Part shown: piece by piece, positions 1 through 17,588 of the stretch
How the letters are laid out: every line of letters starts with the position of its first letter
Numbering within the stretch: position 1 is the stretch's first letter
Source: Blepharisma stoltei ATCC 30299
Taxonomy: Eukaryota > Protista > Ciliophora
Assembly: GCA_965603825.1 (NCBI GenBank)
Contig: CBFDEM010000032.1
Coordinates: 744,001 to 808,000 of the forward strand
Length of the DNA: 64,000 bases
Direction of reading: 5' to 3'
Made by a program: the position numbers and the translations under genes
Notes under the pieces: model-generated
Told to the model about the DNA's origin: nothing
The model's input: the letters and a program-made list of their open reading frames with translations, nothing else
Databases searched by the model: none

Positions 1-2005
1 TTGTTCAACAATTAAGGCCAATTCTAGTCTTTATGATCCGCCACTAATTCAAGCTTACCAAGATTATCTCAAAGCTTATCAACTAAAAACATCTCTTTAT
101 AATATTACAAGAGATAAAGGAAGCAGGAGAACATATTTAACTATTTATAACACTGAAACTGAAACCCAAGAAGTCAAAACCTTGCAGACTCCAGAACCAC
201 TAGACGGTTCTACGTGCATAACTCAACTTCCAAATGGCAAGCTGTTCTGTTTTGGTAATAATACATCTTCAGGAATTACAGTGCTGATTGATGTGGATGG
301 TGGAGCCGAAGTGCTGCCATCAGGAACAAAAAAATGGTATTTATTTTTTATAATTTAGTAGCACCCATCTGGAACTCCTTGCAAACGCTCATCATGTATC
401 TATTTCAACAACAGCGTCTATTGCTTTGGAGGAGCACATAAAGATTATTTAACTCTATCGAGTAGATTTGATTTGGATCAAAATCGATGAATTAAATTAA
501 CTCCAATGCCAGAAGGTGATTGCTATTGCTCTAGTATAATATTTAATGGAAATATTTTGATTTCTGGAAAATTTAGTAGAAATCTTTGGTTATACTCAAT
601 TGATATTGACTCTTTCTCGACAATTCCTTATGAGTTTAAATATAATAAAAGAAAGATCCTGATAAATGCAGAGAGACTCTATTTGATTGAATGCCCTGGA
701 TCAATCTATGAAAGCGAAATTGGAAGTTACTCGAATTGGAGAAGAATAGCAGAATCAGAAATCAATTCTGATTTAGTGTTTAGTTCATATAATAAAGGAG
801 GAATATACATCTCAAATATTTATGCATCGGATAAATATTATTTTTTTAATTTAGATCAAAAAATCATTATTAATATTGCTTACTATGATAGGAATATCGC
901 ACTTAGAAGAGTAGGTAAAAAGATTGAAGTAATAAATTGCAATGTCAATTTTAAGCTTGATTCTAATTATCTGGATGAATGAAGTCTAAAAGGCAATACT
1001 CTAAAGACTTTAGGAGAAAAATTAGAAAAAATCAAATACTGTGACGAATTCATCAAACTCAATCCAAACAATCCTATTTATTACAATAATAAAGGCTGCG
1101 CTTTTAATGATTTAAAAAGATATCTAGAAGCAATCGAATGCTATGACGAAGCAATCAAACTCGATCCAAACAATCCTATTTGTTACTGTAATAAAGGATT
1201 CGCTTTGCTTGATTTAGAAAGATATCTAGAAGCAATCGAATGCTATGAAGAAGCAATTAAACTCAATCCAAACGATGCTATTTATTACTATAATAAAAGC
1301 AACGCTTTGTTTTATTTAAAAAGATATCTAGAAGCAACCGAATGCTATGAAGAAGCAATTAAACTCAATCCAAACGATGCTATTTGTTACTATAATAAAG
1401 GCAGCGCTTTGTTTTATTTAAAAAGATATCTAGAAGCAATCGAATGTTATGACGAAGCAATCAAACTCAATCCAAACGATGCTATTTATTACTACAATAA
1501 AGGCAATGCTTTGTCTTATTTAAAAAGATATCTAGAAGCAGTCGAATGCTTTAACGAAGCAATTAAACTCAATCCAGACCATGCTAATGTTTACTATTAT
1601 AAAGGATATTCTTTAAATAAATTAGGAAGATACTCAGAAGCACTAGAAAGCTATGAAAAAGCAATTAAAATCAATCCAAATAATGCATATTTTTATAATT
1701 GTAAAGGCGATACTCTTTATGCTTTAGAGAGATATCAGGAAGCAATGCAATGCTATAATAAGGCAATCGAACTTGTACCCAATAATCCTTTGTATTTTTG
1801 CAGCCGAGCTAGAGTATTTAATAGTCTCAGACAAGAAGAAGCAGCTTTGCAGGACTTTAATAGGGCTTATAATTTGAAGCAAGAAAATGAAGTAAGTGGT
1901 GTTTTCACTGGGGATGAATGGAACCTTTCTGAGGAGGGTATCAAGTTTATTAACGACGTATTAGGCCGAGACCGTATTGAACTACTCCAAAAAATGCATA
2001 TTTAG
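1..2005 (+). pseudogene. Kelch-like propeller + TPR array gene, copy 1 (5'-truncated by the window edge; interrupted by a 48-nt insertion carrying TAG TAG)
   Basis: Single frame from nt 2 to TAG 2003-2005 when TGA=Trp. The only true stops are TAG TAG at 356-361, inside an insertion absent from copies 2-4. Kelch-like LPNGKLFCFG and VYCFGG motifs; 34-aa TPRs (RYLEAIECYDEAIKLNP). Confidence 0.8.
1040..1580 (+). repeat. 102-nt tandem TPR-coding repeats (also ~4075-4500, ~7670-8570, ~10720-11210)
   Basis: Recurrent block agatatctagaagcaatcgaatgc..gaagcaatcaaactc.atccaaa at 102-nt period. Confidence 0.9.
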
Positions 2006-2282
2006 AATAAAATTTGACTCTAATAAGTCATCATTATAATAATTATATTTAATATTGGTTCTAGCTATATAATAATCTTAAATTTCCTTAGATATTTAAT
2101 TAAAATTCTGAAATACAATCTCTTGAGATCACAATGTAATGCTGATATTGTCCGAATATAAATAAAAAGTTTTAATTGCTTTATACTTACTTTTTTATTA
2201 CGAGTGAACACTATAAAGCTTATAATTCTGCATGATCTATAATTTTATAGCTTTACAAAATTAGATATCTAATAATTGTTAT

Positions 2283-4966
2283 ATGATGGTGAAGAAATGT
2301 TTCGTGCCAGGGTGTACGAACGAGGCTGGGCATTCATGCAAATGCTCTTCTCCTGAGATTTTATTGTGCGAAGAGCATATCGGGGAGCATGTAAACTTAC
2401 CTAACAGAGCTCATAATCTTGAATCAATGTTTATGCAGCCTTGTGAAGGGACAAAAGAAGCAATTCTTGAATTCCTTGCAGAAGAAAATTCAAAATTTAG
2501 CGAGTTGAGAAGAAAAATTATAGATTCCTTTCGCGCGCGTCTTCCTAATTCAGAGAAAGATTTAGGAGATTTCACCAAGTTGGATTGCTTCTTAGATGAA
2601 ATAAATGACTTCATTGCAAAAATTTCCCAAACTTCAAAATTATTAAAGTCAGAAGATCCAATTTTAGGATTATTGAGTTTACAGCCTCAAGAAGCTATTG
2701 AGAAAATAAAATTAATCACCACAGCCAGCAGAGATTGGTACAACGGTGCAAGGCTATTTATTATATTCAATCAAAAGTTAGAGAGTCTAAATAGATCATT
2801 CTTTACAGAAATATGCGGGGCATATCTAGATAAAAGTAATATGCAAAATACTCCTGAAATGCTGAATAAAAGTAAAGCCGCAAGTGTAGAGCCCGCAAAC
2901 GTTAAGGATTCGAATTTTTTGATAATAAATGAGAACTGTGAAAGTTTAAAAAAGTCTGAAAACGAAAATAAGCCAATAAGGCTGCTTAATTTTCAAATAA
3001 GTACTGCTTCTAATGATCTCAACAATAAATCCAAGGAAACAGAAAGCGCTTTAAGCTTTATAGATACCTTAAGAAATAAAACAGCTGAGATTTTGAGTAG
3101 ACCAAACGATCCAGAATTAGAGATAGATTTCAGAACAACTTGCTCAGCAATTCAGGCCAATTCTACTCTTTATGACCCACCACTAATGCAAGCTTACCAA
3201 GATTATCTCAAAGCTTATCAACTAAAAACATCTCTTTATAATATTGAATGAGATGAAGAAAACAATAGAACTAATTTAATTATTTATAACACTGAAACTG
3301 AAACCCAAGAAATCAAAACCTTGCAGACTCCAGAACGGCTAGACCGAGGCACTTGCATAACTCAACTTCCAAATGGCAAGCTATTCTGTTTTGGTAATAA
3401 TACATCTTCAGGAATTACAGTGCTAATTGATGTGGATGGTGGAGTCGAAGTGCTGCCATCAGGAACTCCTTGCTCTGAGTCATCATGTATTTATTTCAAC
3501 AACAGCGTCTATTGCTTTGGAGGAGAAGATAAAAATTATGATAGTTTAACTCTATCTAGTAGATTCGATTTGGATCAAAATCGATGAATTCCATTAACTC
3601 CAATGCCAAAAGCTCATTCCTCTTGCTATAGTATAATATTTAATGGAAATATTTTGATTTCTGGATCTAGTAGTAATCTTTTGTTATACTCAATTGATAT
3701 TGACTCTTTCTCGACAATTCCTTATGAGTTTCAAAACAGTCCTATTAATATCCTGATAAATGCAGAGAGACTCTATTTGATTGCATGCTTTTGAGCTGGT
3801 GAAGTGTATTGCTCATATAATAAAGGAGGAATATATATCTCAAAATCTTCTAGGTTGATTAGAAATTATTATTTTTTTAATTTAGATCAAAAAAACATTA
3901 TTGATATTGCTTACTATAATAGGCATGTCGCACTTAGAAGAGTAGATAAAAAGATTGAAGTAATAAAATGCAATATCCAGAATTTTAAGCTTTATTCTAA
4001 TTATCTGGATGAATGAAGTCTAAAAGGTAATACTCTAAAAGGTTTAGGAGATAATTTGGAAGATATTGAATGCTGTGATGAAGAAATCAAACTCAATCCA
4101 AACGAGGTTTATTTATACAAAAATAAAGGCAAAGCTTTGTTTTATTTAAAAAGATATCTAGAAGCAATCGAATGCTATGACAAGCAATCAAACTCGATCC
4201 AAAAAATGCTGATTATTACGATAATAAGGGCAATGCTTTGTTTTATTTAAAAAGATATCTAGAAGCAATCGAATACTTTGATGAAGCAATCAAACTCAAT
4301 CCAAAAAATGCTACCTTTTACTATAATAAAGGTAGAGCTTTTTATAATTTAGAAAGATATCTAGAAGCAATCGAATGCTATGACGAAGCAATCAAACTCG
4401 ATCCAAACGAAGCTTATTGTTACGGTGATAAAGGATTCACTTTGCTTGAATTAGAAAGATATCTAGAAGCAATCGAATGCTGTGACAAAGCAATCGAATG
4501 CTTTTGCAAAGCATTTAAACTCAGTTTAGACTATGCTATTATTTACTGAATGAAAAGATATGCTTTAAATAAATTAGGAAGATACTCAGAAGCAGTAGAA
4601 AGTCATGAAGAAGCAATCAAAAGCTATCCAAATAATGCCAGATTTTATAATAGTAAAGGCAATAATCTTTATTTTTTAGAGAGATATCAAGAAGCTATTC
4701 AATGCTATGATGAGGCAATCACACTTGAACCCAATAATCCTTTGCATTTCTGCAGCCGAGCTAGAGTATTTAATAGTCTCAGACAAGAAGAAGCAGCTTT
4801 GCAGGACTTTAATAGGGCTTATAATTTGAAGCAAGAAAATCAAGTAAGTGGTGTTTTCACTGGGGATGAATGGAACCTTATTGAGGAGGATATCAAGTTT
4901 ATTAACGACGTATTAGGCCGAGACCGTATTGAACTACTCAAAAAAAAAAATGCATATTTAGAATAA
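2283..4966 (+). pseudogene. B-box-like Zn finger/coiled-coil/Kelch-like/TPR gene, copy 2 (frameshifted)
   Basis: ORFs 2283, 3321, 3603, 3804 and 4056 are in one frame, separated only by TGA. 1-nt deletion near 4181 (gacaagcaatc vs gacaaagcaatc/gacgaagcaatc), in-frame deletion near 3790, A-run slippage near 4940. N-terminus CFVPGC-x7-CKC-x7-CEEH-x3-H-x7-H. Confidence 0.8.
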
Positions 4967-5142
4967 AATTTGATTCTAATAAATCTTTATCTATCTACAT
5001 AAATCAGCCTTTGAGATGGATTTCCTTCAGTATCTTGAATTTTTTGTTTCAAACTTTTAATGGAATCGGGTGAGCTGACTTCAAACTCGTAATATTCTCC
5101 CTCAAATTTTTAACTGGAATTAAAAAGTTTTCGGCAATGTAG

Positions 5143-5547
5143 CTTCATGCTTCGAAACGAAGGAGTATCAGAGCACCGTCATATATATTAAACTCAAAGT
5201 ATTTTCTAAAATGTGACATTTCCATAAGAAGCTGTTCACAAATATCAATAAGCCCTTATAATGAATTCAACTTTTTCTTCACTGCAAATTTAAGAGTTTA
5301 TGCAATTACTAGACAGTATCAAATACGGGAAAGCGAAGAATACAATGAGTATGCTTGAAAGTTAGTTGGGGGAATGGCAGTGATTGGCTCTCCTCTAAAT
5401 CACGCAGTTTTCCAGCTAACCCAAAAAGAGTCAAAATTTTTTGGAATAAGGCAATCACAAAATGTAGGTTATTATAATTTTAATTTCAAATCAAAAAAGT
5501 TTGAAAAGATTGAGAAGGGAAAGAAACCTGCCTGCAGCATCATTTAA
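5143..5547 (+). pseudogene. 3' fragment of a diverged Kelch-like family paralog ending in CaaX (CSII)
   Basis: Hand translation with TGA=W: ...SKYFLKCDISIRSCSQISISPYNEFNFFFTANLRVYAITRQYQIRESEEYNEYAWKLVG...GYYNFNFKSKKFEKIEKGKKPACSII*. It aligns by eye to LWLYSIDIDSFSTIPYEF...AERLYLI...IYESEIGSYSNW...YYFFNLDQK. No upstream start (TAG at 5140). Confidence 0.6.
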
Positions 5548-5804
5548 CACTAATAATTTAGATATTTAATTAAAATCCTCAAATACAATCTCTTGAGATC
5601 GCAATGCAATGCTGATCTTGTCCGAATATAAATAAAAAGTTTTAATTGCTTTATACTTACTTTTTTATTACGAATGAACACTATAAAGCTTATAATTCTG
5701 CATGATCTATAATTTTATTATAAGCTGCCATTTTGCTTTTACTCATTTGAAAAAGGATTAGAATGCATATAGCTTTACAAAATTAGATATCTAATAATTA
5801 TTAT

Positions 5805-8619
5805 ATGATGGTGAAGAAATGTTTCGTGCCAGGGTGTATGAACGAGGCTGGGCATTCATGCAAATGCTCTTCTCCTGAAACTTTATTGTGTGGAGAGCAC
5901 ATCGGGGAGCATGTAAACTTACCTAATAGAGCTCATAATCTTGAATCAATTTTTATGCAGCCTTGTGAAGGGACAAAAGAAGCAATTCTTGAATTCCTTG
6001 CAAAAGAAAATTCAAAATTTAGCGAGTTGAGAAGAAAAATTATAGATTCCTTTCGCCAGCGTCTTCCTAATTCAGAGAAAGATTTAGGAGATTTCACTAA
6101 GTTGGATTGCTACTTAGATGAAATAAATGACCTCATTGCAAAAATTTCCCAAACTTCAAAATTATTAAAGTCAGAAGATCCAATTTTAGGATTATTGAGT
6201 TTACAGCCTCAAGAAGCTATTGAGAAAGTTAAATTGATGACCAAAAACAGCAGAGATTGATACAACGGTGCAAAGCTATTTATTATATTCAATCAAAAGT
6301 TAGAAAGCCTAAATAGATCATTCTTTACAGAAATATGCGGGTCATATCTAGATAAAAGTAATATGCAAAATACTCCTGAAATGCATAATAAAAATAAAGC
6401 CGCAAGTGTAGCAAACGTTAACAATTCGATTTCCATGATTTCAATGATAATAAATGAGAACTGTGGAAGTTTAAAAAGGTCTGAAAAAGCAAGCAAGCCA
6501 ATAAAATTGCTTAATTCTCAAATAAGCACTGCTTCTAATGATCTCAACAATAAATCCAAGGAAACAGAAAGTGCTTTAAGCGTCATAGATACCTTAAGAA
6601 ATAAAACAGCTGAGATTTTGAGTAGACCGAACAATCCAGAATTAGAGATAGATTTCAGGACAACTTGTTCAACAATACAGGCGAATTCTAGTCTTTATGA
6701 CCCACCACTAATGCAAGCTTACCAAGATTATCTCAAAGCATATCAACTAAAAACATCTCTTTATAATCTTAGAGAAGATAGCAATGGAACTAACTTAATT
6801 ATTAATAACACTGAAACTGAAACCCAAGAAGTCAAAACCTTGCAGACTCCAGAACCACTAGACAAGACAACTTGCATAACTCAACTTCCAAATGGCAAGC
6901 TATTCTGTTTTGGTAATAATAAACACTCAGGAATTGCAGTGCTAATTGATGTAGATGGTGGAGTCGAAGTGCTGCCATCAGGAACTCCTTGCTCTGGCTC
7001 ATCATGTATCTATTTCAACAACAGCATCTATTGCTTTGGAGGGAGAGATGAAAATGATTATGCTTTTACTCTATCTATTAGATTTGATTTGGATCAAATC
7101 GATGAATTCAATTAACTCCAATGCCAAAATCTGATTACTCTTGCTCTAGTATAATATTTAATGGAAATATTTTGATTTCTGGAGATTATAGTGAATATCT
7201 TTGGTTATACTCAATTGATATTGACTCTTTCTCGACAATTCCTTATGAGTTTAAATATAATGATAGAAAGATCCTGATAAATGCAGAGAGACTCTATTTG
7301 ATTGAATGCCCTGGATATTTGATTGAATGCCGTGGATCAATCTATGAAAGCGAAATTGGAAGCTACTCGAATTGGAGAAGAATAGCAGAATCAAAATTCA
7401 ATTTTAATCAAGTGTTTTGTTCATATAATAAAGGAGGAATATACATCTCAGATATTTATGATTCGGCTGAAGAATATTATTTTTTTAATTTAGATCAAAA
7501 AATCATTATTGATATTGCTTACTATAGTCAGCATGTCGCACTTAGAAGAGTAGGTAAAAAGATTGAAGTAATAAAATGCAATGTCGATTTTAAGCTTGAT
7601 TCTAATTATCTGGATGAATGAGGCTATACTCTAAGGACTTTAGGAGAAGATTTGGAACGAATTGAACCCTATGACAAAGCAATCAAACTCAATCCAGGTG
7701 TTGATTCTTACACTTTAAAAGGGAACACTTTGTATTATTTAGAAAGATATCTAGAAGCAATCGAATGCTATGAAGAAGCAATCAAACTCGATCCAAACAA
7801 TGCTAAATTTTACGATCTTAAAGGATAAGCTTTGTTTAATTTAGAAAGATATCTAGAAGCAATCGAATGCTTTGACGAAGCAATCAAACTCAATCCAAAC
7901 AATGCTAACTTTTACGATATTAAAGGATTAGCTTTGTCTCATTAGAAAGATATCTAGAAGCAATCGAATGCTTTGACGAAGCAATCAAACTCAATCCAAA
8001 CGAAGATTATTTTTACAATAGTAAAGGCAGGGCTTTTTCTAATTTAAGAAGATATCTAGAAGCAATCGAATGCTATGACGAAGCAATCAAACTCGATCCA
8101 AACAATGCTAACTTTTACGATATTAAAGGATTAGCTTTGTTTGATTTAGAAAGATATCTAGAAGCAATCGAATGCTTTGACGAAGCAATCAAACTCAATC
8201 AAAACAATGCTAACTTTTACGATATTAAAGGATTAGCTTTGTTTAATTTAGAAAGATATCTAGAAGCAATCGAATATTTTGACGAAGCAATCAAACTCGA
8301 TCCAAACAAAAATAGCTTTTACAATAATAAAGGATTAGCTTTGTCTCATTTAGAAAGATATCTAGAAGCAATCGAATGCTATGACGAAGCAATTAAACTC
8401 GATCCAAAAAATGCTACCTTTTACAATTATAAAGGCGACGCTTTTTATAATTTAGAAAGATATCTAGAAGCAATCGAATGCTATGACAAAGCAATCAAAC
8501 TCGATCCAAAAAATGATGATTATTGCAATAATAAAGGCAAAGCTTTGTCTAATTTACAAAGATATCGAGAAACAATCAAACCTAAGAATTCATGCTTTTC
8601 TAAATGCATAATTATCTAA
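5805..8619 (+). pseudogene. B-box-like/coiled-coil/Kelch-like/TPR gene, copy 3, C-terminal CaaX (CIII)
   Basis: Paralogous to copy 2. 1-nt deletion near 7099 (caaatcga vs caaaatcga), in-frame TAA at 7826-7828 (tta in sister repeats), 1-nt deletion near 7942. Eight RYLEA TPR units. Confidence 0.85.
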
Positions 8620-8756
8620 TTTCTTATTTAAGGCTCTTATATATCAAATTTTAATTAAAATTTTCATAAATATACCTTGCCTAGCTGAAGTTATAATTAG
8701 AGCTGCTTGGCCAAATGTATATAGCTTTAAAACACTAGATATCTAATAATTATTAT

Positions 8757-11254
8757 ATGATGGTGAAGAAATGTTTCGTGCCAGGGTGTATGAACGAGGC
8801 TGGGCAATTATGCAAGTGCTCTTCTCCTGAAATTTTATTGTGCGAAGAGCACACCGGGGAGCATGTAAACTTACCTAATAGAGCTCATAATCTTGAATCA
8901 ATTTTTATGCAGCCTTGTGAAGGGACAAAAGAAGCAATTCTTGAATTCCTTGCTAAAGAAAAGTCAAAATTTAGCGAGTTGAGAAGAAAAATTATAGATT
9001 CCTTTCGCCAGCATCTTCCTAATCCTGAGAAAGGTTTAGGAGACTTCACTAAGTTGGATTGCTACTTAGATGAAATAAATGACCTCATTGCAAAATTTTC
9101 CCAAACTTCAAAATTATTAAAGTCAGAAGATCCAATTTTAGGATTATTGAGTTTACAGCCTCAAGAAGCTATTGAGAAAATAAAATTAATGACCACAGTC
9201 AGCAGAGATTGATACAACGGTGCAAGGCTATTTATTATATTCAATCAAAAGTTAGAAAATCTAAATAGATCCTTCTTTACAGAAATATGCGGGGCATATC
9301 TAGATAAAAGTAATATGCAAAATACTCCTGAAATGCTGAATAAAAGTAAAGCCGCAAGTTTAGAGCCATCAAACGTTTAATTAGTCTAAATTATTTTTGC
9401 TTTATTGATTTTTTTCTATTTTATGCATCAAAATGTAATGACTTGATAATGTGCCTCCAGCATTTTACTTCCAATAAAGCTTCGATTTCCTTGATAATAA
9501 ATGAAAACTGTGAAAGTTTAAAAAGATTTGAAAACGCAAACAAGCCAATAAGGTTACTTAATTTTCATATAAGCACTGCTTCTAATGATCTCAACAATAA
9601 ATCCAAGGAAACAGAAAGTGCTTTAAGCTTTATAGATACCATAAGAAATAAAACAGCTGAGATTTTGAGTAGACCAAATAATCCAGAATTAGAGATAGAT
9701 TTCAGAACAACTTGTTCAGCAATTCAGGCCCATTCTAGTCTTTATGATCCACCACTAATGCAAGCTTACCAAGACTATCTCAAAGCTTATCAGCTAAAAA
9801 CATCTCTTTATAATCTTAAATGAGATAGCAATGGAACTAAATTAATTATTTATAACACTGAAACTGAAACCCAAGAAGAAATCAACACCTTGCAGACTCC
9901 AGAACGGCTAGACTCTTACACTTGCATAACTCAACTTCCAAATGGCAAACTATTCTGTTTTGGTAACTGTCCAGCTTCTGGGATTACAGTGCTGATTGAT
10001 GTGGATGGTGGAGTCGAAGTGCTGCCATCAGGAACTCCTTGCTCTGGCTCATCATGTATCTATTTCAACAACAGCGTCTATTGCTTTGGAGGAAGTAATG
10101 AAGATGATAGTGCTTTAATATCTATTAGATTCGATTTGGATCAAAATCGATGAATTAAATTAACTCCAATGCCAAAAGCTGATTATTGGTGCAATAGTAT
10201 AATATTTAATGGAAATATTTTGATTTCTGGACATTGAAATAAAAATCTTTGATTATACTCAATTGATATTGACTCTTTCTCGACAATTCCTTATGAGTTT
10301 AAATATAATGAAAGAAAGATCCTGATAAATGCAGAGAGACTCTATTTGATTGAATGCCGTGGATCAATCTATGAAAGCGAAATTGGAAGCTACTCGAATT
10401 GGAGAAGAATAGCAGAATCAAAATTCAATTTTAATCAAGTGTTTTGTTCATATAATAAAGGAGGAATATACATCTCAAATATTTCTATATTAGATGAAGA
10501 ATATTATTATTATTTTTTTAATTTAGATCAAAAAATTATTATTGATATTGCTTACTATGGTAGGCATGCCGCACTTAGAAGAGTAGGTAAAAAGATTGAA
10601 GTAATAAAATCCAATGTCCAGAATTTTAAGCTTGATTCTAATTATCTTGATGAACGAAGTCTAAAAGACAATGCTCTAAAGACTTTAGGAGAGAAATTTG
10701 CAAAAATTGAATTCTATGACAAGCAAATCACACTCGATCCAGACAGTGCTACCTTTTACAATAAAAAATGCAATGCTTTTTATAATTGAGAAAGATATCT
10801 AGAAGCAATCGAATGCTTTGACGAAGCAATCAAACCAAAAGATGCTAATTATTACAATAAAAAAGGCCACGCTTTTTGTAATTGAGAAAGATATCTAGAA
10901 GCAATCGAATGCTATGACGGAGCAATCAAACTCGATCCAAAAGATGCTAGCTTTTATGATAATAAAGGCGACGCTTTTTATAATTTAGAAAGATATCTAG
11001 AAGCAATCGAATGCTTTGACGAAGCAATTAAACTCGATCCAAAAAATGCTATTTATTACAAGAATAAAGGCGACGCTTTTTATAATTTAAAAAGATATCG
11101 AGAAGCAATCGAATGCTTTGACGAAGCAGTCAAACTCGATCCAAAAAATGCTATTTATTACAAGAATAAAGGCGACGCTTTTTATAATTTAGAAAGATAT
11201 CGAGAAGCAATCAAACCTAAGAATTTATTCTTCTCTAAATGCATAATGATCTAA
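8757..11254 (+). pseudogene. B-box-like/coiled-coil/Kelch-like/TPR gene, copy 4, C-terminal CaaX (CIMI)
   Basis: 8757-9377 and 9476-11254 are each open with TGA=W. They are separated by a 98-nt insertion (9378-9475) that begins with an in-frame TAA. Confidence 0.8.
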
Positions 11255-11689
11255 TTTCTTATTTAAGGCTCTTATATATCAAATTTTAATTAAAATTTTC
11301 ATAAATATACCTTGCCTAGCTGAAGTTATAATTAGAGCTGCTAGCCTCATCAGAATATTTCATTGTGGGCATAGTATAGTAGCAGTATCAGAACTTGATA
11401 AAAAATCATAGACTTCACATGCTTTTTTGGTTTGAGTTCTATAAGAATTGATTTGAATTCGCTTTTGGGCTTTCAGCTTTTTTGGCTTTTCTTGAGTTAA
11501 AGATCGAAGGACCAAAGTTTGAGAAGTCTTCGAAATATTAATTTCAGGCTCCTGAGATTGTGTGAGAATGGCGTCGAGCTGCTCATGAATTACTATGCCA
11601 GTTAGGCCTTGGAATCTAAGAGGCTTCTTTGTTATTGCATCTGGGCACTGTTGATCAAGCATCTAAAAATTTATTTAAATAAGGGGATT
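11218..11689. repeat. ~470-bp direct repeat, copy A
   Basis: Near-identical to 13776-14242; differs by an extra atagt and a few substitutions. Confidence 0.95.
11360..11662 (-). pseudogene. Frameshifted duplicate of the 113-aa hypothetical gene at 13874-14215
   Basis: Same protein up to DTAT; the 5-nt duplication atagtatagt at ~11371-11380 shifts the frame. Confidence 0.75.
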
Positions 11690-14731: not shown

Positions 14732-15166
14732 ATGGATATCGAATCAATCATACATTCTAGGCAGCAATTCGCTATGAATTGGCTATCTAATTACATCAAC
14801 TTAAGCCAAATTTTTACTGCCTATTCCCTACAAAAATCATTTGAGGCCTCAACAATTAATCAGAAACTAGACAAAAACTTAGCAGAAAAAATAGAAAAAA
14901 ATAATTTTCATTGTACAGTTTGCAATAAAGATTTCAACTCCTATAAAGGTTTAAAGCAGCATATAGGTAAAAGCCACGACAATACAGTCAAAAATTTTTG
15001 CTGTGAGACTTGCAGCAGGCTTTTCAACAATAAATATGCTTTGAAATTCCATATAAGGCAGGTGCACGAAAAATCAACCGCTGTGAAGTGCGATGCATGC
15101 GAAAAAGTATTTTATAATAAATACAAACTGAAGGAGCACTCAACCAAAGCCCACAATAATTTATAA
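14732..15166 (+). CDS. C2H2 zinc-finger protein (3 fingers)
   Basis: CTVC..HIGKSH, CETC..HIRQVH, CDAC..HSTKAH. Confidence 0.9.
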   Translation: MDIESIIHSRQQFAMNWLSNYINLSQIFTAYSLQKSFEASTINQKLDKNLAEKIEKNNFHCTVCNKDFNSYKGLKQHIGKSHDNTVKNFCCETCSRLFNNKYALKFHIRQVHEKSTAVKCDACEKVFYNKYKLKEHSTKAHNNL

Positions 15167-16365: not shown

Positions 16366-17391
16366 TTAGTCTTTTGGCAAAAAAGAATGCGAAACCACTG
16401 GCTTTTCTTCAATTTTACTCACAACTTCTTCTTTACCTTTTTTTAAAAATTTTTCAATTTTTTCAAATTTCTCTTTGTCAATAATTTTTTTCTCTTCATC
16501 GACCTTAATTTCAACGAAATCTGACTTAATGTCGTTATCATTTTTGCTATACATCTTTATGGCTTCTACCTTTACGAGAACATTCTGTAGCAGACGGTCT
16601 AAGTTTTCTTTTTCTTGGATTTGCTTATTAAATTCAGAGCTTATGCTGCTTATTTGAATTTCTGCGCTGTCTATTTGGTCTTTAAGTCTACTTATGCTTT
16701 CTAATAGTTCTTTTTCGCTCTCCACAAGCCTTAAAACTTGAGATTCTAAATGGACTTTTTCTTGTTTCAGCATATCTAGCTGAGTATTTTGGAGCTCAAT
16801 TGATGAGCTTAAATGGTCTAACTGATTGTCTATAGTCCCTTTATACTCAAAAATCTCTTCAACAGACTCTGCTAAGTCACTAAAAATTCCAATTCCTTGA
16901 GCTTGCTCATTTTGCATTTGGATTTTTTGTCTATTTAACGCTTTGATTTCTTCTTTAGCATCAGCTAAGTCTTCATTGTTTTTATTTATTTCGTTTATTT
17001 GTGTTTCTAAAGAATTTTGCAAATTTTTAATATTGTCTTGCAACTGATTTCTGGTGTCTTGCATGGATTTTATTTCTTTCATAGTGAAAAGCTTTTCGTT
17101 TTCTAGGTCATCGATAAACCCTTTTTCTTTAGAAATTTTGGATTCTGAGTCTTCTATTTGTTGCTGGAGAGAAGTATTTAAGGTTTCTAGCTTAGCTTTG
17201 CGGTCTTCTAAGGATTTAACTTTGGTTTTGGTGGATTCGAGAGAGAAAAGAGCTGGAATTAGGTCAAGTTCATCTCCATCTGCCTTAAGAGGATCGCAGT
17301 CAAGGTTTAATTGAGGATAAAGTTCTTTTAGCTCATTACAAGGGACAGAGTATGTGAAGCCTATAAGGAGAAGTAATAGAAAACCCTTCAT
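16366..17391 (-). CDS. Secreted long coiled-coil protein
   Basis: Signal peptide MKGFLLLLLIGFTYS followed by heptad-rich E/K/Q sequence. Confidence 0.8.
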   Translation of the reverse strand: MKGFLLLLLIGFTYSVPCNELKELYPQLNLDCDPLKADGDELDLIPALFSLESTKTKVKSLEDRKAKLETLNTSLQQQIEDSESKISKEKGFIDDLENEKLFTMKEIKSMQDTRNQLQDNIKNLQNSLETQINEINKNNEDLADAKEEIKALNRQKIQMQNEQAQGIGIFSDLAESVEEIFEYKGTIDNQLDHLSSSIELQNTQLDMLKQEKVHLESQVLRLVESEKELLESISRLKDQIDSAEIQISSISSEFNKQIQEKENLDRLLQNVLVKVEAIKMYSKNDNDIKSDFVEIKVDEEKKIIDKEKFEKIEKFLKKGKEEVVSKIEEKPVVSHSFLPKD

Positions 17392-17588
17392 TAAATTATT
17401 ATTTTAACGGATTTTTAGCGTATCCATTTTTGATTAGGGATATTTTAACATTCATGCTTTTATCCTATTAAAAGATTGATACAAAATGCTATTTTTATGC
17501 ATCTAAATAATTTTATATGCTTAATAAAGCATTAAATTTTGTTAATACAATTGCCTTACCAAATAAATTTTATTATAACAATTTTGAA

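Follow-up and report, generated by a model that had tools for sequence, protein, structure and literature searches.

Tandem zinc finger, Kelch propeller and TPR genes of Blepharisma stoltei: a disrupted array from a large family with two variable surfaces

The array, its copies and their lesions

The window analyzed here comprises 64,000 nt of the ciliate Blepharisma stoltei ATCC 30299 (GenBank assembly GCA_965603825.1, contig CBFDEM010000032.1, positions 744,001 to 808,000 of the forward strand), and its positions 1-11254 contain four tandem paralogous units, c1-c4, all on the plus strand. They belong to a gene family whose complete member is an intron-less open reading frame (ORF) of about 800-1000 codons, encoding, from the N-terminus on, a C5H3 zinc finger, a stretch of long helices (approximately 270 residues), a Kelch propeller with six blades, a solenoid of tetratricopeptide repeats (TPRs) and a conserved C-terminal helix. 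Short patches of this otherwise conserved sequence are hypervariable, they lie on one predicted face of the propeller and at a few positions of the TPR units, and the substitution counts point to diversifying selection at both, yet each of the four copies is disabled.

The genome of B. stoltei (41.46 Mb, 64 contigs) was assembled from HiFi reads into 64 telomere-to-telomere contigs, has introns of 15-16 bp and reads UGA as Trp (PMC9942806). Positions 1-11254 are somatic sequence, and all frames were read with TGA=Trp; ORFs translated in this way coincide exactly with the annotated proteins at seven paralog loci.

In the alignment, the local copies consist of near-identical blocks broken by patches of 6-30 nt, within which almost every base differs, and the length differences between the array copies are multiples of three. 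The conserved blocks noticed in the preliminary description of this DNA are thus real, but its "nearly nucleotide-identical scaffolds" were an overstatement, as scaffold windows of 300 nt share 88-98% of nucleotides and whole units 84-88%. The local cluster has six copies, c1-c4 being accompanied by two upstream copies on the minus strand, of which one, m1, is intact (ORF of 1021 codons) and the other is partial.

The first unit, c1, occupies positions 1-2005 (stop codon TAG at 2003-2005), and its 5'-terminal 859 nt lie upstream of the window. Within the window, its helical region comes to an end and is followed by the propeller (about 137-934), the TPRs (about 983-1800) and the C-terminal tail conserved in the family. 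The copy is interrupted by a 48-nt insertion at 323-370 that brings in two in-frame stops, TAG TAG, and is bounded by an 11-nt direct repeat with one mismatch; with the insertion removed, c1 forms one ORF of 938 codons. The second unit, c2 (2283-4966), encodes the zinc finger (2298-2414), the propeller (about 3276-3965), the TPR array and the C-terminal tail. Blade 4 of this copy lacks 72 nt in frame (near 3790), and the loss of 1 nt near 4178 shifts the frame within its TPRs; the public annotation splits the copy into products of 655 and 138 amino acids.

In c3 (5805-8619; zinc finger 5820-5936, propeller about 6795-7573) the ORF is broken by a 1-nt deletion in an A-run at 7103, by a TAA at 7826-7828, which falls on the hypervariable TPR position 9, and by a 1-nt deletion near 7940. 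Near 7295, moreover, 21 nt are duplicated in frame, and the 3' end is truncated and without the tail conserved in the family; this copy is annotated as products of 436 and 235 amino acids. In c4 (8757-11254; zinc finger 8772-8888, propeller about 9842-10606), 106 nt at 9378-9483 replace the 8 nt found in paralogs, this net insertion of 98 nt causing a frameshift and a stop. Its head is annotated as an ORF of 207 amino acids and its tail (ORF 9449-11254) as a protein of 601 amino acids, P0106. Altogether, the public annotation cuts the array into products of 499, 655, 138, 436, 235, 207 and 601 amino acids. Head-only and tail-only genes of this family, comparable to the two parts of c4, are common elsewhere in the genome.

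Copies c3 and c4 have a common 3' breakpoint inside a TPR unit (...IKPKN..., at 8560-8760 and 11195-11345), directly followed in both by about 150 nt of near-identical non-coding sequence. Since they share the same truncated end, they result from the tandem duplication of a unit of about 2.95 kb that had lost its 3' part before.

Tiny introns were considered as the source of the frame breaks and rejected, as eleven paralogs are single uninterrupted ORFs and the 48-nt insert of c1 has no GT..AG solution; hence the breaks are lesions. With all four window copies disrupted, the array amounts to pseudogenes or fragments, not to the working system suggested earlier, although intact members do exist at 11 other loci. 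Judging by their reading frames, the four copies are not functional genes, and their value is that of a record of the process that shaped them.

Domains, fold and extent of the family

The uninterrupted ORFs at the 11 loci with intact members have 816-1021 codons (802-1013 codons when counted from the start codon), and the number of TPR repeats differs among members. One of them, P0001 (the ORF of locus L005), was modelled with AlphaFold2 from a family alignment of 49 sequences, with a mean predicted local distance difference test score (pLDDT) of 83.8. The model consists of a small zinc finger (residues 6-50, approximately), long helices (57-326), six four-stranded blades (328-595), a TPR solenoid (606-848) and a C-terminal helix (861-883).

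The propeller of the model (pLDDT about 90) has 24 strands and one extra N-terminal strand. Its Foldseek matches are KLHL20 (5yq4), KLHL3 (4ch9), Kelch13 of Plasmodium falciparum (PfK13, 4yy8) and the SAKe6 designs, with template modelling (TM) scores by target of 0.56-0.77 and root-mean-square deviations of 3.3-5.9; the best matches to KLHL20, KLHL3, PfK13 and designed Kelch reach TM 0.70-0.77. Pfam scores of P0001 exceed the cut-offs for Kelch_6 (27.9, cut-off 25.3) and Kelch_1 (23.7, cut-off 20.1), and those of the window pieces alone are just under the cut-offs. According to the model, the propeller is of the Kelch type, with six blades of four antiparallel strands each. TPR_1 is matched with E = 5.8e-70 (seven repeats) in c1 and with E = 4.1e-52 in c3, and the modelled solenoid (pLDDT about 97) matches consensus TPR (CTPR) and OGT in Foldseek. 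By Pfam, neither NACHT nor NB-ARC domains are present in the window pieces or the full-length members, and no BTB, BACK or F-box domain was found in the window pieces, P0001 or the fusion paralogs described below.

The only zinc finger begins five residues after the ORF start. Its eight metal ligands are conserved (C6, C11, C19, C21, C29, H32, H36, H44), and their spacing resembles that of B-box1. Still, none of 50 members matches the Pfam zf-B_box domain (PF00643), even at E <= 10, profile searches against the Protein Data Bank for a B-box gave coiled-coil noise only, and Pfam reveals no RING finger in the window pieces or in P0001. A separate model of residues 1-330 (pLDDT 81) has no significant Foldseek match, the top weak rows being TRIM5 B-box2/coiled-coil constructs (E = 0.53). 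In VIA, a TRIM5 B-box2/coiled-coil construct is the sole row spanning the finger (Z = 7.8, non-significant), and in the ESM Atlas B-box clusters account for three of ten rows at a weak TM of 0.23-0.26 (below 0.3), with one feature match also to a B-box. Thus, of the TRIM layout proposed in the preliminary description, the succession of zinc finger, predicted long helices and binding domain stands, whereas the B-box has only these weak TRIM5 leads: the finger is possibly B-box-like (unproven), and lacking a RING, the proteins are not members of the TRIM family.

The family is large. A tblastn search of the genome matches the N-terminal module at 129 or more places and the propeller at 150 or more, many of these in tandem arrays, and 30 of the 150 propeller matches are within 20 kb of a contig start, compared to 4.6 expected (p = 4e-16). 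Roughly one in four propeller matches contains TAA or TAG. Other tandem arrays of the same propeller family lie at C19:47-58 kb, C60:50-71 kb, C61:88-96 kb and C30:118-126 kb, the one on C19 consisting of "headless" propeller-TPR genes. The same propeller is fused to a U-box in P0124 (U-box E = 1e-19), to a protein kinase in P0113 and P0122, and to a kinase and TPRs in P0117; the zinc-finger head is also seen combined with TPRs alone or with Kelch alone.

No species other than B. stoltei yielded a homolog: all 44 homologs found in a set of 5.8 billion clustered proteins are its own, as are all seven sampled of the 89 matches that HMMER gives among 1.84 billion representatives. Neither Kelch nor TPR is mentioned in the genome paper (PMC9942806) and its supplement, and no paper linking Blepharisma to such a family was found in the searchable literature. 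The family is therefore known only from B. stoltei and, as had been supposed, is without description in that literature.

Variable positions, selection and exchange

The five sets of loop variants listed as examples in the preliminary description are all present in the four copies. In particular, LD-GS/RG/KT/SY-TC is encoded, in the order c1 to c4, at 206-211, 3345-3350, 6864-6869 and 9914-9919, and MP-EGDCYCS/KAHSSCY/KSDYSCS/KADYWCN at 512-532, 3609-3629, 7127-7147 and 10175-10195. The hypervariable patches of c2 are located at 3345-3350, 3399-3407, 3471-3479, 3525-3545, 3609-3629, 3666-3674, 3732-3746, 3843-3866 and 3918-3929, and the homologous patches lie within 206-898 in c1, 6864-7537 in c3 and 9914-10570 in c4.

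A codon was considered hypervariable in the local set if it encodes at least three different residues among five local copies (c1-c4 and m1). Such codons are strongly clustered, forming 20 adjacent pairs compared to 3.7 +/- 1.8 after shuffling (none of 20,000 shuffles reaches 20), and are concentrated in the propeller (36 of 255 codons, vs 11 of 329 in the N-terminal part). Their positions agree with the columns that vary among ten unlinked paralogs (odds ratio 25, p = 6e-11).

When the hypervariable positions are placed on the modelled strands, 28 of the 81 positions in D-A and B-C loops are variable, but none of the 44 in A-B and C-D loops and only 8 of the 131 in strands (Fisher p = 8e-7), where the variation is mostly at strand ends. 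Every D-A and every B-C loop varies, all patches listed above for c2 map to one of these two loop classes, and 23 of the 30 inserted alignment columns fall there as well, the other seven being classed as strand. The B-C loops come after the Kelch GG doublet. In a beta-meander, successive loops emerge on alternate sides, so all variable loops lie on one face of the modelled propeller. The variable windows are, as proposed initially, Kelch inter-strand loops. In KEAP1, KLHL3 and KLHL proteins the D-A/B-C loop face is the substrate-binding one. The number of distinct variants per loop is 22-36 among 52 sequences, some of which are duplicates (15 for the short 4B-4C loop).

The TPR array is variable too, in agreement with the earlier suggestion of two variable binding modules per protein. 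It is built of 102-nt units with a nearly invariant helix B (for example, 7924-8616 in c3), and the entropy of the unit peaks at positions 2, 9, 13, 6, 1, 12, 3, 34 and 5. Judging from these sequence profiles, the array is a second variable surface, formed by helix-A positions. In the TPRs of fungal NLRs, polymorphic and selected positions fall on the concave binding surface (PMC4986451).

For the analysis of selection, the proportions of non-synonymous (pN) and synonymous (pS) differences were counted. To avoid circularity, the ten unlinked paralogs were used to set the hypervariable columns, and the five local copies to measure them. In the hypervariable propeller columns, pN is 0.44 and pS 0.23, compared to 0.044 and 0.086 in the propeller scaffold and 0.056 and 0.128 in the N-terminal region. 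Compared to the synonymous divergence of the scaffold around the loops, the loop pN is therefore 3-5 times as high. Six intact pairs were analyzed as well, with columns set on all other sequences, and in five of them the ratio of pN in hypervariable columns to pS in the scaffold is 2.2-3.8 (p from 1e-4 to 2e-10). Within the TPR units, the variable positions have a pN 2.0 times as high as the pS of the remaining positions, and the identity between units is higher for nucleotides than for amino acids. The three codon positions differ at rates of 0.47/0.45/0.27 in hypervariable columns vs 0.048/0.046/0.077 in conserved ones, so the changes fall mainly on positions 1 and 2, as noticed before. The proposed diversifying selection on propeller loops, and likewise that on TPR positions, is supported at the level of such counting, the loop pN exceeding the scaffold pS 2- to 5-fold.

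The five local copies show all ten possible 2:3 site patterns (12, 8, 8, 7, 7, 6, 5, 5, 3 and 2 sites). A single tree accounts for only two of them, which makes the local copies mosaics. Between members on different contigs the scaffold pS is only 0.14-0.21; therefore either exchange or a very recent spread keeps the scaffold alike and the loops different. Shuffling of loop cassettes among paralogs was rejected, since no loop variant of the array recurs in the other sampled paralogs.

The locus was compared with its counterpart in GCA_914767885.1 (L022), taken as a germline-like assembly of the macronuclear genome with internally eliminated sequences (MAC + IES), as described in PMC9942856. 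Apart from inserted blocks, L022 has the sequence of the window, the matching stretches being 99.9-100% identical. Its contig measures 1.10 Mb and that of the window 0.835 Mb. A somatic segment of about 35 bp with the PC-xx-SSC patch is enclosed, in c2 and in c3, by a pair of germline-limited elements about 160 and 270 nt long (element sites at 3466-3478 in c2 and 6985-7007 in c3, corresponding to L022:3166-3608 and L022:7114-7559). A paralog at another locus, L011, has the same pair. The first element of the c2/c3 pair is bounded by an 11-nt repeat without TA, and the 48-nt insertion of c1 equals its left 33 nt and right 15 nt joined at TA|TA. The c1 relic may thus reflect either an internal deletion in the germline or an alternative internal excision leaving stops in the somatic gene. 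Four further paralogs were checked; in paralogs other than L011, such elements sit within a scaffold strand or among the TPRs, or are missing altogether. A link of germline-limited DNA and its excision with the variability of the loops was therefore rejected as a general mechanism.

In two paralogs the germline-limited insertions of the TPR region, 613 and 335 nt in length (L023:5001-8354 and L025:1501-4388), have TTA/TAA at their borders and inverted ends rich in C (TTACTCCCCCC...GGGGGGAGTTA), resembling an abundant family of miniature inverted-repeat transposable elements (PMC9942856). Blocks present only in L022 also occur downstream of the array (14825-14879, about 15697, 17010-17209, 17443-17546 and about 18003), as germline-limited DNA in neighbouring genes. 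Elsewhere in the genome, twelve full-length, near-identical small-subunit ribosomal RNA genes (for example, C23:325806-327536) are distributed over eleven somatic contigs, with two on C51, rather than on one ribosomal DNA chromosome.

Interpretation and comparison with known systems

These observations are probably best explained by a duplicating and exchanging family that loses copies to pseudogenes and is selected at two surfaces, its products being putative cytoplasmic binding modules whose recognition may be signalled by the heads of the various paralogs. The data show a family that grows by tandem and chromosome-end duplication, with a scaffold kept similar by exchange between copies and with frequent loss of copies to pseudogenes. 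Selection for amino acid replacements and for indels that keep the frame acts on just two surfaces, namely the D-A/B-C face of the propeller and the helix-A positions of the TPRs. As the window copies bear the imprint of selection, yet each is disabled, they are recent casualties of this birth-and-death turnover.

The proteins would bind diverse or fast-changing protein or peptide targets. A cytoplasmic location is suggested by the N-terminus, which opens directly with the zinc finger and has no evident signal peptide, and a function in recognition by the location of the variable surfaces and by analogy. Since paralogs join the same propeller to a U-box ubiquitin ligase domain or a protein kinase, recognition may be passed on by ubiquitination, by phosphorylation or by assembly through the helical head. 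As candidate targets, foreign ones (bacteria, viruses, prey), other cells of the species and the cell's own proteins can be named. More tentatively, and rather doubtfully, the family may constitute an innate, germline-encoded repertoire of an undescribed kind, with more than 100 cytoplasmic receptors that each combine two independent hypervariable surfaces, a Kelch loop face and a TPR groove, and have interchangeable heads (B-box-like/coiled-coil, kinase or U-box). Duplication, exchange between copies and the turnover of pseudogenes would replenish it close to chromosome ends, and disrupted copies like c1-c4 would act as sequence donors for intact neighbours.

Several observations weigh against the reading of a selected, turning-over family. 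The closest and youngest intact pair, L004/L005, has a ratio of hypervariable pN to scaffold pS of only 1.08. The pN and pS values are pairwise counts with path averaging rather than likelihood estimates, a crude measure with loops near saturation. The scaffold pN/pS of about 0.3-0.5 indicates rather relaxed constraint, and exchange among copies undermines tree-based readings. The frameshifts of c2 and c3 are 1-nt deletions in short homopolymers, though the assembly is HiFi-based and the public record has the same breaks.

Among other explanations, it is unlikely, but worth weighing, that the proteins are ordinary endogenous adaptors that diversified toward many proteins of the cell itself, as BTB-Kelch and F-box-Kelch substrate adaptors subfunctionalise, with loops whose divergence reflects earlier specialisation or conflict within the genome and not an arms race against external agents. 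Fusions to a U-box or a kinase suit the logic of a substrate adaptor, the constraint on the scaffold is moderate, and no signal of a link to pathogens or symbionts was found. What speaks against such adaptors is the copy number of at least 150, the enrichment near chromosome ends, the loss of about half of the close members to pseudogenes, the uniqueness of almost every gene in each loop and the restriction of all homologs found to B. stoltei: copy number, location, turnover and range are contingency- or immune-type rather than housekeeping features.

Relaxed constraint and decay, with the loops being an unconstrained surface in recent, largely dead duplicates and no positive selection, is a much less probable explanation. 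It would agree with the disruption of four out of four window copies, the stops in about a quarter of the propeller matches and the scaffold pN/pS. However, neutral loops could not pass the synonymous divergence of their flanks, whereas the loop pN is 2-5 times as high, and codon positions 1 and 2 change more than position 3. Moreover, the propeller loop patches contain in-frame indels only and no stops (the sole stop within a patch is the TAA of c3, at TPR position 9), and hypervariability at these loop positions is also seen in intact, annotated genes. Finally, programmed or mutational diversification, by alternative excision of germline-limited DNA or by templated patch conversion from pseudogene donors, is the most improbable of all, because, for all the paired elements around the PC-xx-SSC segment in c2, c3 and L011, the relic at the same site in c1 and the mosaic local copies, only one of 11 patches is flanked so, the elements of other paralogs are elsewhere or absent, the patches lie in stretches that match between the somatic and MAC + IES records, and no loop variant of the array is found again in other sampled paralogs.

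The family combines hallmarks of recognition families: it has many copies, is restricted to one lineage and enriched near chromosome ends, and its positive selection is limited to two surfaces known to bind ligands. Ciliates encounter intracellular bacteria, viruses, prey and mating partners, and the family is a testable candidate for the recognition of variable targets by a single-celled predator. Its natural variants also show where variation in a Kelch propeller and in a TPR groove is compatible with the fold. We know of no intracellular receptor repertoire described in ciliates, and, to our knowledge, the combination of zinc finger and helices with Kelch and TPR is not used by known immune receptors.

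By analogy, the family appears comparable to TRIM5 and TRIM-NHL proteins, to the repeat domains of fungal NLRs and to expanded families of ubiquitin-ligase adaptors. As in TRIM proteins (TRIM-NHL, TRIM5alpha), a zinc finger is followed by a long helical region and a C-terminal binding domain, and a six-bladed propeller is also present in TRIM-NHL. In TRIM5alpha, positive selection is concentrated in the variable loops, which, as here, belong to the surface of the binding domain. Unlike in TRIM proteins, there is no RING and no zf-B_box match in any of the 50 members, the propeller is of the Kelch rather than the NHL or SPRY type, and a TPR array follows it.

Kelch adaptors (KLHL/KEAP1, plant F-box-Kelch) differ from the family in the head, which here is a zinc finger with helices, a kinase or a U-box, with no BTB, BACK or F-box and no evident link to cullins; shared features are the six-bladed Kelch fold, with its D-A/B-C face that is variable here and binds substrates in KEAP1 and KLHL3, and, in one paralog, a U-box E3 domain. 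Positive selection in the substrate-binding domain of adaptor families was reportedly noted by Thomas in 2006. The F-box and MATH-BTB families of nematodes and plants are likewise large and lineage-specific, with positive selection in the substrate-binding domain, and PMC8120010 reportedly gives one example of such an adaptor family.

Fungal NLRs with highly conserved TPR, ANK or WD repeats (Dyrka et al. 2014, PMC4986451) have no counterpart here of their NACHT or NB-ARC domain, and the propeller adds a second variable module. Their repeat criterion is at least 85% identity across 100 or more amino acids, and in our core units the mean amino acid identity is lower, 0.72-0.79 (maximum 0.91), with a nucleotide identity of 0.86-0.89 in the array copies. 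The similarities concern near-identical repeats whose number depends on the gene, concerted evolution, positive selection at a few fixed positions of the repeat, and combinatorial architectures with varied N-terminal heads.

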